Source of the DNA: Mytilus californianus
Taxonomy: Eukaryota
NCBI RefSeq assembly: GCF_021869535.1
Contig: NW_026262668.1
Coordinates: 95,356,001 to 95,420,000 of the forward strand
DNA length: 64,000 bases
Direction of reading: 5' to 3'
Every line of letters begins with the position of its first letter. The stretch's first letter is position 1. The position numbers and the translations under genes are program-made. This document shows, piece after piece, positions 7,301 to 13,300 of this stretch. The notes beneath the pieces are model-generated. The model saw only the letters and a list, made by a program, of their open reading frames with translations, had not been told where the DNA came from and ran no database searches.

Positions 7301-10300
7301 TGGTGATATTTTAATCAGACTAGACAAAGTGCTGATTTAATGAACTTTGATTCAAACTTAAACAATGGTTACATATCTTTTTTTTCCCCATAACCTTTAT
7401 ATCAGTCTTGTACAATATGTGGCATTGACATATCATCTTTTGTAAACAAAGCAACTGGCATTAACATACCTTTTTAAACACGGCAGCAATGAGTGCTGAC
7501 CTTGCTCTCATTCCTGTTGTCATAGAGATGTGGAAATTTTGATGGAAAAATGTTGACTGGAAAATAGCAACAACAAAAAATCCAGCAGCTAATATGTATC
7601 CTTTCCATTCCGCTTCAGGACGACCTGCAAATCTATTATTTGTGTAGCCAATCAAAGCACTGAAAAAGGAAGATAAAATTGAGAATGGAAATGGGGAATG
7701 TGTCAAAGAGACAACAACCTGACCAAAGAGCAGAAAACAGCAGAAGGCCACCAATGGGTCTTCAACACAGCGAGAAAATCCAACACCCGGAGGCAGGCTT
7801 CAGCTGACCCCTAAACAAAAATGTGTACTAGTTCAATGAAAAATGGACGTCACACTAAACTCCAAAACATATAAATGAACTAAAATTAAAAAACATACAA
7901 GACTAACAAAGGCCAGAGGCTCCTGACTTAATTGGGACAGGCGCAAAAATGCAGCAGGGTTAAAGATGTTTGGTGAGATCTCAACCCTCCCCCTATACCT
8001 CTAGACAATGTAGAATAAACAAACACACAGCAATACTTACAGTAAAACTCAGTTTAAAAGAAGTCCGATGTCAGAATAGGTAACAAAAGAAACTAAGCAA
8101 AATGACAAAGATACATAAATTAACAAAGGACTACTAGCAGTTACTGACATGCCAGCTCCAGACCTTAATTAAACTGATTGAAAGATTATGTCTTCATCAT
8201 ATGAAAATCAAGCACAATCCCTCCCATTAGGGGTTTAGTATCATACCATCATAAAATATATGAGAAGAACATAACCCATATCATGCCAACAACTGGTTTT
8301 AAAATAAATGTGTTTATTTCCGATGCAAAGACCCTATGAGTGAATCAATATTAATACCAAAATACGCCATCCTTAATGACCTGACAACAGTATCGTAACT
8401 ATATCCCTTCTGAATAAGTCTGTTGAAAGGTTTGGTAAGCTTTTGAGGTGAATGTCGACATTTTTGTGCTTTGTATAGAATATTACCATAAAAGATTGGA
8501 TGTGAAATACCTGAACGTATAAGATGTCTGCATGTTGATTTATATTTACGAATGATGTCCTTGTACTGATGATAAAATTTCGTAAATGTTTTGACTAGTT
8601 TGTGATATCGAAAACCCTGGTGCAATAATTTTTCAGTAAAACAGAGTTTCTTTCATTAAAATCAAATACTTTATTACATACACGAGCGAATCGAACAAGT
8701 TGAGATATATAAACACCATAAGATGGTGACAAGGGAACGTCACCATCTAAATATGAATAATTAACAATAGGAAACGAAAAATCACCTCTTTTATCATTAA
8801 TTTTGGTATTAAGCTTCCCGTTAAAGATATATATATCAAGATCCAGGAAAGGGCAGTGTTGATTGTTAGTATTAGCTTTATTTAAAGTCAGTTCAGCAGG
8901 ATAAATCTCTTTAGTGTACATACTGAAGTCGTCATTATTGAGAGACAATATATCATCCAAATATCTAAAAGTGTTATTAAATTTTGGTATCAGATGTTGT
9001 TTCGATGGGTCTTTGCTGATTTTAGTCATAAATTGTAACTCATAACAATACAGAAACAGGTCCGCAATAAGTGGTGCACTGTTAGTCCCCATTGGAATTG
9101 CGATATCTTGACGATATACGGAATCTCCATAGCGAACAAAAACATTATCTAGTAAAAATTCAAGGGCAGTAATAGTATCAAAGCAGGTCCAAGTGACATA
9201 GTTCTTTTGTCTGTTGTTACTAAAAAATGACCTAAAAGAGTTAGAACATATATATTCGCATTCTGACTTTTTAAATGCCCATTTAATTAGGTGTGTGAAT
9301 TTTTTCTTAATAAGATTATGAGGTAAAGTGGTTACTGGTATATAGGGTAGAAAAATAAAAACTTTGAACAGATTCGAAATCACCAATATAAGCATGCAAT
9401 TTATCAAGTACTTCAAACGAATTTTTAAAACTCCAAAAGTAATTAATTCCACTATTTTCAAGGGCCTTACTTGAACAATTTATTACCAGGATTTTGATTG
9501 TACCAAGTGTACTAGTAAGTAGAATAGACAGTTTAGTAGTGGAACAATGGCTTGAAGACGAAATAAATCTATATTTGTAAGGTGTTTTGTGCAGCTTCGG
9601 AAGCCAGTACATAGTTGCAACTTTCATTGTATTTGTTTCTGCTTATAAAGAAGTAGCTAAAAGTTTATGTTTGTTACAGATGTCATTTTCCTAAAATGGA
9701 GTCAGTTTGAATGTTGGTGAATTCATGATTTCCTTTTGCAGAACCTCAATGTAAAATTTAAGTCAAACAATAATGATATTATTAGCAGTCTTATCAGCCG
9801 GAACAAAAACAAATTCCTTGGTGAGTTTTTTTAGCTTATATTTAGGGGCTATTATGGTAGTTGTTAGGAGTAAAACGATCTTTAAAATGTTTAATACGAT
9901 AATCAACTATGTTCATTACTGAATTAAAAAAAGAATCTTAGGATTTTTTGTCACCTTTTTCTCGTTTTATCCATTTCGAGCAGTAAGTACGGAGTGAGTA
10001 GTGGATGATATTACGACACTCATTCCAATTAATAATTGACGGGGGACGATATTTAGGTCCTTTACTGAGGAATGATTTCAACTCTTGGTCATGAACGATG
10101 TTAAGGTTTCTTGTTATAAAATGGGAACTGGGGCCATAAATGTATTCGGAATTACTGCAATTTCATGACGTAGGTGTATTGTCACTGATATTAACATTTT
10201 TACATACTTTGCTATAATTAAACACATATTTCCGGGTAGATTTTTTGTAAACATAACAAATAAGAGGAAGTTCAGTATTATCAAAATAGCCAGGAATTTG

Positions 10301-13300
10301 TTCTTTAACAGATAAATCATTAAAAATACCGGCAATATTTACAAGATGAACTCATTCAAAAGGCACCAAGAAAGATTTAGGAAGTTTATAATTTCTTCAT
10401 TACTAATAAGTACATGTACTTGCAGTTATTTCAAATTAGATCATGATGTCCTTCTTATGCTTTATACACAAACTTTTCAAAGCCATGTTTTAATTCCAAT
10501 TTAACATTGGGTACCTATGCATAATGTCACTATTTAACTTCGGAGAGAATAAAACTTCACATAGAAAAAATAGGCATGGTTTTGTGTTTTGAATTTTTAT
10601 GAGAATAACAGGATTATGCTATTTCCGGTATTGGTTAAAGTGTAGTTCTCTACTAAAAGAGACACTATATGTACAATTTTACATATTTATAAAAATATTA
10701 CTTTACATCAAAATAATATATAACTGTTATATCATATTTTGTGATTTAAGAAAAGTGTTAAATGAAATCCATTTCACTTACTTTAGTAGTAGAGGGGACA
10801 TAAACTGTAGAAAATCATACACCAATTTACATCCCCAGGATTTAAATAAGTCTACTCCATACACCTTAAACAAAGTTTTTGTTAGGGAAGCCTTGTTTTG
10901 AGGCTTTTCTGGTTTGGCACCCTCCTTTATAACCACTTCAGGCTCATTCTCATTTCCCAAAAATGGAGTTTCCTCTTGTATTTTATCCTGTCTTTGAATT
11001 TTACGCTGTTTCACACTGGTTGAAGTACTTGGCACTTGGGTTGTAGTAGCTGGTTTGATACTGAAAAAAATTATAATCCAGATTATTTTATTCATTCTAA
11101 GAGATCTGATTACCACAGAGTGACCACAGGTACTTGTCTCTGAAAAAATACCTAAACACATTAATATAACACCAGGTACCCAAATCGCATTTTTGAGAAA
11201 TGACACTCTTAGCGAACTGCTGTTATATTTTGATTCTGTGGTTGTCTTTCTTACAGAAACTTGTTATGTAGTAAATCTACATTACATTATCTACAAAATG
11301 GTATATGACACATCTATTTTTGTTGACTAATCATTCCTAGCATGCCTTCCAAGTAGGTCAACCATAAATCATTTCGTCTTCTTACAGCCAAATGGCAATG
11401 TCAGATTTTCTTTATTCAACAAAAAGCCAACAGGAATAAAATACAAAATCTAAGTGTAGTAATAAACATACCAAAATCAAACTTCAGTTCAATATATGCA
11501 AGCATAACCCCAAAATATCCTGACATGTTAAAACTTTCATTAAATATATAAATTCCAGGGCGGTAATTGTATAATAAACAGCTGCGCCATGAGCGCATGA
11601 TACGCCCGTCGTCTTGTGTGTGAATTTTTATGCAATAATCATAAATAGTTTCTGACATACAGCCTGACATGCGAAAACCCCCTTTTTTTTACAAAAAAAT
11701 CAATATCTCTAAAATAAAAGTTTGAATCAAAACCAAAAAGTATACAGATCTTTAGATTAATATAACTAAGATTTGTGTAAACTTTTAAGCAATAATCATA
11801 AACCGTTTTTGAGATACGGCGCGACATGTGAAAACCCCCCCTTTTTTTTTTAAAAAAAAATCAATATCTCAAAAATAAAATTTTGAATTAAAACCAAAAA
11901 GTATACAGATCTTTAGATTAATATAACTAAGAAGTGTGTAAAATTTTAAGCAATAATCATAAATCGTTTTGAGATACGGCGCAACATGTGAAAAACCCCT
12001 CCCCTTTTTTTACAAAATACTCAATAACTCAAAAATAAAATTTTGAATCATCACCAAAAAGTATACAGATCTTAAGATTAATATAACTAAGAAGTTTGTA
12101 AAGTTTTAAGCAATAATCATAAATTGTTTTTGAGATACGGCGCGACATGTGAAAAAAAACACACACCTGTTTTAGTTACTAAGTCCTGTAACTCAAAAAG
12201 TTTTAATCTTATTTTCACCAAAAAGTATACAGATCGTTTGACCATCTTAAGAAACAACTATGTTAAGTTTCATGAAATTTGGATAAGTCGTCCTCAAGTT
12301 ACGGTGCGACATGTTTACGCCCGACAGACAGACGGACAGATGACATTTGTATACCATAATACGTCCCGTCAAAATTTTGACGGCCGTATAAAAAATAAGT
12401 CAACCATAACAAAACATGCACTGATACTAATCATTACACCACTACATACCAAATAGTAACTAAATTCCAGCAAGCAAAGTGGAAAAAGTATAGACAACTG
12501 ATATCTTACCAAGGACAGTATGAAACAAAGAAAGGAGCAGAATAACAGATAAAGGTAAATGTAATGCCTCTACCACTAATTGGTGTAAAAAGAAAATTTA
12601 TTATAAGCATTCTATAATTTTGATTTCAAACTTTCCTTCTAAGGTCATTATTAAGATCTATATTTTTATCATAAATTTGAAATTATCAACTTACTCTCTG
12701 ACTGCATGTTTCTTTAATTCTTTCTTCCATACTTTTTCAAAATTTGGAACAACTTGATCACTTTTGTCTCGAGGATGGAGATCAGCAATATCAGTTTCCT
12801 CCAAATCCTTTTTATAACCTGTGACAATAAGACTGAAAGGAACATGTAAAAACTATTTTAAATAAAGTTTTTCAGAGATATGACCTAAACAATACATACC
12901 CTTTATAGCTTGCTGATCTGTGTGAGCCAAGGCTCCGTGTTGAAGGCCGTACTTTGACCTATAGTTGTTTATTTTTTACACATTGTGACTTGGATGGGGA
13001 GTTGTCTCACTGGCATTCATACCACATCTTCTTATTTCTATATATGTATTTTTGGCATTGCACAAGGCCATGCTTATGATGTCTTTACACTAAATTCATA
13101 AGATGTGTACTGAATGAAATTATAGATAGTTTGAGAAAATATGGTTCATTTAATAGTTGGAATAGGCTTTGAACTAGCTTTCAGTAACTGTGAGTACTCA
13201 TATTGGTACCATGTGTTTTTTTGTCATATTGTTTCAGATACATGTGTCCTTCGTGCTGTCCAAATTCAGGGCCCTGTAATTTAGTTGTCGTCATTGTTTG

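Follow-up and report, generated by a model that had tools for sequence, protein, structure and literature searches.

Naiads are Penelope-like elements (PLEs) defined by an N-terminal GIY-YIG endonuclease, a CxC linker, a DKA motif in place of DKG in the reverse transcriptase (RT), the IFD, pseudo-long terminal repeats (pseudo-LTRs) and the lack of a hammerhead (Craig et al., 2021; PMC8557442). The CX2-5CxxC and CCHH motifs of their endonuclease separate them from Chlamys elements, and they are frequently 5'-truncated or inserted in tandem (PMC8557442). Four Naiad families, two from clams and two from spiders, encode selenoproteins, with three to four UGA codons each and a selenocysteine insertion sequence (SECIS) adjoining the stop codon. 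In all four, UGA replaces the Cys that precedes GIY-YIG and the one located eight residues past DKA (DKA+8); the clam families also have it at the first Cys of CCHH, and one spider family at the second Cys of CX2-5CxxC (PMC8557442). Mussel Naiads were analysed in the same work, but its main text names none among the selenoprotein-encoding families, and a full-text literature search found no further report on PLEs encoding selenocysteine (Sec) beyond Craig et al. (2021). Here, we describe a Naiad family of the mussel Mytilus californianus, starting from a copy in a 64,000-nucleotide stretch of contig NW_026262668.1 (assembly GCF_021869535.1, forward-strand positions 95,356,001 to 95,420,000), which we refer to as the window and number from its first nucleotide. 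An initial annotation of this DNA had proposed a decayed, Sec-recoding Naiad akin to the spider and clam elements. We are virtually certain that the element is a copy of a Naiad and that TGA is the state of its family, and, judging from sequence comparison, its UGAs are very probably decoded as Sec in active members of the family.

The copy spans positions 10350-7673 on the minus strand, the strand of all its features given below. These limits, obtained with blastn against 30 other genomic copies, agree closely with the 10345-7675 first proposed for an RT-last PLE reading frame with a CxC-type linker. In a whole-genome search with thousands of first-look candidates, 40 scored copies are 89-94% identical to it. 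Three-frame translation from 10450 to 7600 gives, in order, the CxC-type linker ('..NISDNTPTS'), 'KGPKYRPPS', the DKA region, the RT motifs 'FSTLYT', 'GIPMGTN' and 'RYLDDIL', and the frame end '..GSLHRK' followed by TAA (8316-8314), a codon that closes the family frame in 25 of 26 copies. The DKA motif itself (9795-9787) is mutated to DKT; the family and its relatives have PADKAANN. Translation also recovers both in-frame TGAs that had been noticed at Cys-expected positions: one replaces the first Cys in CxC, so that the motif reads u-N-C (10165-10163, family codon 427), and one lies eight residues after DKA (9765-9763, family codon 564). A SECIS-like hairpin had been reported 42 nt past the stop codon; the hairpin is there, on the same strand, at 8262-8198, but the distance is 51 nt. 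It lies within a 3' untranslated region (UTR) that extends, by its blastn limits, from 8313 to 7673. The first ~1.35 kb of the element, comprising the 5' UTR and the GIY-YIG endonuclease, is missing, and the copy is regarded as 5'-truncated because the DNA upstream of 10350 is homologous among other copies for up to ~1.4 kb.

The absent 5' part is carried by full-length copies. The family unit measures ~4.02 kb and holds one open reading frame (ORF), in which an N-terminal GIY-YIG endonuclease is followed by the CxC linker and then the RT. Its 5' part reads 'C-HAKK-u-LT-C' and 'DIT-u-K..IIY.LT-u-NKPGCGIQYVSETGRYLSKRTQEH...', and contains the CX2-5CxxC motif, the pre-GIY-YIG Cys and the CCHH finger, with three further conserved TGAs among them. 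The endonuclease lies upstream of the RT in one frame ('..IIY..(U)..C..YVG/S-ETGR..') in the majority frame of the family as well as in the related elements L037, L038 and L040. Zinc-finger-like motifs (C-x4-U-xx-C, and U-x4-C followed by invariant His residues) recur in full-length copies and relatives; in L038, one of them consists of Cys throughout (CNAKSCNCC). The CxC motif is u-N-C in the subfamily of the window copy and C-N-C (TGT AAT TGC or TGT AAT TGT) in sister subfamilies, and PADKAANN is found in the family and in 18 of 18 homologues spanning DKA. Between FSTLY and GIPMG, where an IFD inserted between RT3(A) and RT4(B) would sit, we count by eye ~80 residues. The last ~84 nt of the 3' UTR recur upstream of the 5' end in full-length copies as a pseudo-LTR or tail, and family copies occur in tandem at a spacing of 4,020 nt; together, these features are the pseudo-LTR and tandem habit of PLEs. 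Rfam searches returned no hammerhead match at E<=5-10 and, in the window element, no other credible RNA family. The family shows every defining Naiad trait that could be put to the test.

The domain calls are based on these motifs, on the published description and on neighbours in the ESM Atlas, those of the zinc fingers on motifs. In the Atlas, the N-terminal piece has GIY-YIG clusters as its neighbours (score 0.95); for the RT frame that is intact in copy L029, the neighbours bear HTH_animal/RVT_1, which is typical of PLEs. When the RT and endonuclease pieces were scanned against Pfam, neither RVT_1 nor GIY-YIG was returned, searching PDB with a profile of the endonuclease/linker alignment produced chance matches only, and an AlphaFold2 model of that piece (pLDDT 45.8) was too poor for use.

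To establish the codon state of the family, 26 independent copies were aligned without segmental duplicates, majority-occupied columns were indexed and codons were tallied per column. In the resulting majority frame, one phase stays open for 1,044 codons between a TAG and the TAA, interrupted in at least half of the copies by just five stops. All five are TGA and occupy conserved-Cys positions: codons 97 (second Cys of CX2-5CxxC), 128 (the Cys preceding GIY-YIG), 139 (first CCHH Cys), 427 (first CxC Cys) and 564 (DKA+8). The 70 other stop events (42 TAA, 19 TGA, 9 TAG) each affect a minority of copies. Genome-wide counts of exact patterns give TGA in 412 of 435 cases at the CCHH site and in 92 of 99 at the pre-GIY site; at the zinc-finger site, it is found in ~90 of 100 among the matches listed, the first 100 of 313. 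DKA+8 is TGA in 23 of 25 independent aligned copies. Genome-wide, it is TGA in 93 of the 100 matches listed when the flanks are strict, and in 98 of the 100 listed (the first of 1,339) when they are degenerate and catch sister subfamilies too. TGT and TGC are rare at all four of these sites.

The CxC site behaves differently within the genome. TGA occupies it in 15 of 17 aligned copies of the window subfamily, and the first 100 of 604 genome-wide matches, those listed, comprise 28 TGA, 68 TGT and 4 other codons. The codon is linked to the flank variant and is thus split by subfamily; a third subfamily (L018, L019) has TGT there. Sister subfamilies with TGA in common elsewhere accordingly carry either putative Sec or Cys at CxC, and the window copy belongs to the TGA subfamily. 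A tabulation of this kind had been suggested from the outset as a check, with TGT or TGC at both window positions as part of the outcome that would speak against recoding. TGA is instead the family state at both, because it dominates at DKA+8 and, in the window subfamily, at CxC. That the TGAs are a private decay of the window copy is ruled out by the 26-copy alignment and the genome-wide counts. In a comparison with sequencing reads, none of the 40 best-supported of 762 differences lies at a TGA site, which is no proof in itself.

The hairpin past the stop codon is a whole-model match to Rfam SECIS_1, with 30.5 bits and E=0.003 in 3.5 kb searched; the gathering score of the model is 35 bits. 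Better-kept family copies reach 34.5 and 36.1 bits, most copies score slightly below 35, and just one of 20 scanned copies exceeds the threshold. For the window copy, the support consists of the covariance-model match, the position and the conservation, folding energy giving none. The SECIS is kept across the 26-copy alignment of the family. In an alignment of 8 sequences that includes SECIS matches from four related families, AUGA, AAA and the 3' GA are retained, and 10 of 13 helix pairs have changed on both sides in a compensatory manner between families. All the SECIS compared fold as helix I, internal loop, helix II, AAA bulge and mini-stem, with an AUGA core, a helix II of 10 bp, AAA, the mini-stem and GA in succession. 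Given the mini-stem after AAA, the form looks type II-like.

Related elements provide a second line of evidence. The intact RT frame of L029, 480 residues long, retrieves 1,654 relatives, and the 18 fetched ones that span DKA have Cys (13) or 'W' (5) at DKA+8. Both 'W' proteins for which DNA was fetched have TGA at this codon, in a gene that is untranslatable under code 11 and was called with a TGA=Trp code. Three relatives on public contigs have ORFs that are long and otherwise uninterrupted. L037 has an ORF of 1,002 codons with four TGAs, at the zinc-finger, pre-GIY, CCHH and CxC sites, no other stop, TGT at DKA+8, and a SECIS_1 match of 28 bits 52 nt past the stop; L040 repeats this pattern with four TGAs over ~1,000 codons and a 25-bit SECIS_1 match. 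The ORF of L038 (1,099 codons) has three TGAs, which lie at the CxC, CCHH and pre-GIY sites, and its stop is overlapped by a 36-bit SECIS_1 match. L036 has TGA at both CxC and DKA+8, L039 at DKA+8 together with a SECIS of 34.6 bits, and L041 at CxC, with no SECIS in the 189 nt of sequence searched. CxC is therefore TGA in L036, L037, L038, L040 and L041, and TGT or TGC occupies DKA+8 in L037, L038, L040 and L041. Without decoding of the TGAs, it would be very difficult to account for an ORF that runs for a thousand codons free of TAA and TAG and yet has three or four TGAs, each at a Cys site.

Public gene catalogues also hold such ORFs in disguise. Some entries were translated with TGA as Trp and show 'W' at the presumptive Sec positions (P0100, P0104, P0112, P0114, P0119; loci L036 and L039), and others are cut to the frame of 430-480 residues that follows the DKA+8 UGA; both forms are a systematic annotation artefact that hides Sec-Naiads. 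A further relative of 568 residues, P0111, has an RT 49% identical and Cys at DKA+8; its database entry is a hypothetical protein assigned to 'Campylobacter sp. CS_ED1', and it is most likely animal-derived contamination of a bacterial assembly.

The sequence on either side of the TGAs has evolved under constraint. Between the family and L037, the median ratio of nonsynonymous to synonymous substitution rates (dN/dS) is approximately 0.19, 0.28, 0.10, 0.05 and 0.09, from start to stop, for the five scorable segments between UGAs. Within the family, variants common to at least three copies comprise 72 synonymous and 29 nonsynonymous changes (71% synonymous), and private variants 254 and 704 (26.5% synonymous; Fisher odds ratio 6.9, p=1e-18). 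Shared variants arose in the replicating lineage, and private ones reflect decay after insertion; the synonymous excess among the former therefore indicates that, in the lineage with five TGAs, the sequence before and after them evolved as protein-coding. Furthermore, a frame of exactly 480 residues is open from the DKA+8 stop to the terminal stop at at least 80 of 89 scored genomic places. Many of these places have identical scores, suggesting that a burst occurred recently and that the family may be active even now; it may not be merely 'decayed'.

On the reading that we favour, the SECIS would recruit the host SECIS-binding protein and the Sec-specific elongation factor with Sec-tRNA, each UGA would be decoded as Sec and the full endonuclease-RT protein would be made; transposition would then require both a supply of selenium and the Sec machinery of the host. 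The codon state of the family, the conserved SECIS and the intact UGA-containing relatives support this interpretation, which the initial annotation had offered for the active ORF. The host genome has two tRNA-Sec genes, with 79.6 and 77 bits (cut-off 47). It also contains ~50 tRNA-like matches at G000:C154:27755505-27807263, mostly 728 nt apart, which reach 42.8 bits with RF01852, below the cut-off, and are probably a tandemly repeated ordinary long-arm tRNA gene rather than tRNA-Sec.

Several observations weigh against Sec decoding. The three 5' TGA sites are backed by five to seven aligned copies and the pattern counts. The SECIS_1 scores straddle the gathering score (25-36 versus 35 bits), and the window hairpin is no more stable than shuffled sequence (z=-0.14). 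Synonymous divergence from L037 is saturated, hence the approximate nature of the dN/dS values, all of which are far below 1, and the 10-codon segment between the second and third UGA yields no estimate. RNA reads fall on both strands of the family, 81% of them run on into unlike sequence, and no element-length transcript is shown among them; transcription of the family looks largely passive, as chimeric read-through of host transcripts. Lastly, five UGAs served by one SECIS would need processive decoding. Such decoding of multiple UGAs is known for selenoprotein P and is usually inefficient.

The modest SECIS scores, mostly slightly below the gathering score, and the unremarkable fold energy of the window copy are also what might be expected if the UGAs were read through or recoded independently of any SECIS, with near-cognate Trp, Cys or Arg, and if the hairpin were a signal for transposition or RNA stability that merely resembles one. 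Gene callers do obtain full-length products by reading the TGAs as Trp (code 4), but this 'W' arises as an artefact of annotation with gene callers made for prokaryotes. The hairpin keeps every hallmark of a SECIS (AUGA, AAA, the GA side of the quartet and a 10-bp helix II) while its helices co-vary across families, and the five recoded codons stand, as the family state, at Cys positions, where they interchange with TGT or TGC and never with TGG. We consequently regard SECIS-independent readthrough as improbable.

Two other explanations take the UGAs as genuine stops. They could have been handed down as lesions from a single master copy, in a family that is dead or non-autonomous and was spread in trans by the proteins of another PLE; every one of the 26 aligned copies, like the window copy, is indeed broken or truncated, and 5' truncation is extreme throughout the family. 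However, it would be odd for such lesions to be shared only as TGA and only at Cys sites, and purifying selection is seen on both sides of the testable UGAs, between families as well as within this one. Diverged families, moreover, have different combinations of TGA and Cys in otherwise uninterrupted ORFs of 1,000-1,100 codons, and the RT frame is open at most of the scored places, which makes a dead family very unlikely. Alternatively, the UGAs could divide the element into separately translated ORFs for endonuclease pieces, linker and RT, by reinitiation or internal initiation, and the 480-residue frame after the last UGA does have an internal Met 45 residues in, from which callers predict proteins of 435 residues. 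We give this division hardly any credence: two UGAs lie 11 codons apart within the GIY-YIG/CCHH core, where they would cut the nuclease fold, the segments between UGAs have no conserved start codons, the DKA motif would be parted from the rest of the RT, and the conserved SECIS would be left unexplained. Decoding of the UGAs as Sec thus remains the interpretation that we prefer.

The window copy itself is inert, because it has no endonuclease part and contains three extra stops (TAA 9940, TAG 9693 and TAA 9645) and three frameshifting indels; its description as decayed was correct. Its longest open RT piece (9461-8598) covers 288 residues with the GIPMGT and YLDD core motifs and shares 87% identity with the RT frame that is intact in another copy. 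It is a dead, 5'-truncated insertion of a Naiad-type PLE, in sense orientation, within an intron of an ABCC-like gene. Exons of this ABC-transporter gene lie on the same strand at 7473-7659 and 6530-6727 (Pfam ABC_membrane, E=0.012 and 1.8e-6, respectively), and the exon beginning at 7659 is preceded by its AG acceptor (7661-7660). Only ~13 nt upstream of this acceptor lies the 3' end of the element (7673), so that the polypyrimidine tract abuts the element.

Further PLE RT fragments in the window, at 42760-44008 and 41221-41820 on the minus strand and at 47554-48085 on the plus strand, are 29-45% identical to the RT of the family. The copy at 42760-44008 has no SECIS_1 match at E<=5, and it is truncated downstream of the DKA region and of every Cys/Sec site, so it speaks neither for nor against the coexisting non-Sec family that the initial annotation had seen in it. 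DNA read depth over the family is enormous and strongly biased to the 3' end, falling 20-100 fold from 3' to 5'. Copies L025 and L014 contain insertions of ~330 nt from other, SINE-like (short interspersed element-like) repeats; the one in L025 parts the stop codon from the SECIS, and the one in L014 is inside the endonuclease region. Three full-length copies, L032, L034 and L035 (G000:C143, 103.44-103.81 Mb), show 98-99% mutual identity and represent a segmental duplication rather than three insertions, because several kb of their flanks are 98-99% identical as well. Likewise, L022-L024 on C88 form a local triplication with a period of 5.6 kb.

What these observations mean for Naiads at large can be stated with less assurance. 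We consider it a balanced conjecture, as easily wrong as right, that Sec-Naiads form a large, old and still active clade throughout bivalves, in which single Cys positions (CxC, DKA+8) flip between Cys and Sec among sister subfamilies; that the present family, with five Sec at putative metal-binding sites, would have more of them than any described transposon; and that thousands of SECIS-bearing 3' ends, scattered into introns and UTRs, could seed new host selenoproteins. So far, selenoprotein-encoding transposons have been the subject of a single paper on four families, to which the Mytilus family would add a host lineage, a fifth UGA and a Sec position in CxC. Relatives with UGA and SECIS on marine metagenome and genome contigs suggest that Sec-Naiads are commoner than reported. 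Sister subfamilies that differ only by Sec or Cys at CxC within one genome would offer a natural experiment on the two residues in a nuclease/RT. The genome has at least 1,300 copies with the DKA region and many more 3' ends, which amount to ready-made SECIS spread through it and bear on the origin of selenoprotein genes. For annotation, the lesson is that apparent stops in bivalve PLEs should not be 'corrected' away.

Sec decoding by Naiads has been known from clams and spiders since 2021, and the Mytilus family is a new and richer example of it, not a new mechanism; new here are the five UGAs, the putative Sec position in the CxC motif and the apparent switching between Sec and Cys among subfamilies. 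Its closest counterparts, by motifs, are the clam families Naiad_Mmer (Mercenaria mercenaria) and Naiad_Scon (Sinonovacula constricta), which share the GIY-YIG/CxC/RT order, the UGAs at the pre-GIY-YIG Cys, the first CCHH Cys and the DKA+8 Cys, and a SECIS near the stop codon (Craig et al., 2021, Mol Biol Evol 38:5005; PMC8557442). In Naiad_Mmer, the SECIS overlaps the stop, as it does in the related contig L038. Unlike the clam families, which have three or four UGAs, the Mytilus family has five, the additional ones standing in for the second CX2-5CxxC Cys and the first CxC Cys; the latter position is not listed in PMC8557442. Its SECIS also looks type II-like, whereas the published Sec-Naiads have type I, and its sister subfamilies appear to switch between Sec and Cys at CxC.

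The spider families Naiad_Sdum and Naiad_Smim (Stegodyphus) resemble it in their UGAs within CX2-5CxxC (at the first, or the first and second Cys), before GIY-YIG and at DKA+8, and in the SECIS in their 3' UTR; they differ in their arthropod hosts, for which the authors propose an independent origin, and chelicerate Naiads have no IFD (PMC8557442). Cys-type Naiads of bivalves, such as the extended Penelope-2_CGi of oysters and the relatives P0002-P0004 and P0026, have the same architecture and motifs, with an RT that is 57-77% identical, but Cys where the family has UGA, and no UGA at DKA+8. 'Cys-type' is valid only site by site, because the DNA of the nearest relatives has upstream UGAs together with a SECIS-like element (L037, L040) or with no detected SECIS (L041).

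Among host proteins, finally, selenoprotein P offers the nearest parallel, with several UGAs per ORF that are decoded processively by means of a SECIS in the 3' UTR; it is especially Sec-rich in bivalves (Baclaocos et al., 2019, as cited in PMC8557442). It is, however, a transport protein of the host that typically relies on two SECIS, whereas the Naiad product is a transposon enzyme with one SECIS and with Sec predicted at putative metal-binding Cys positions.

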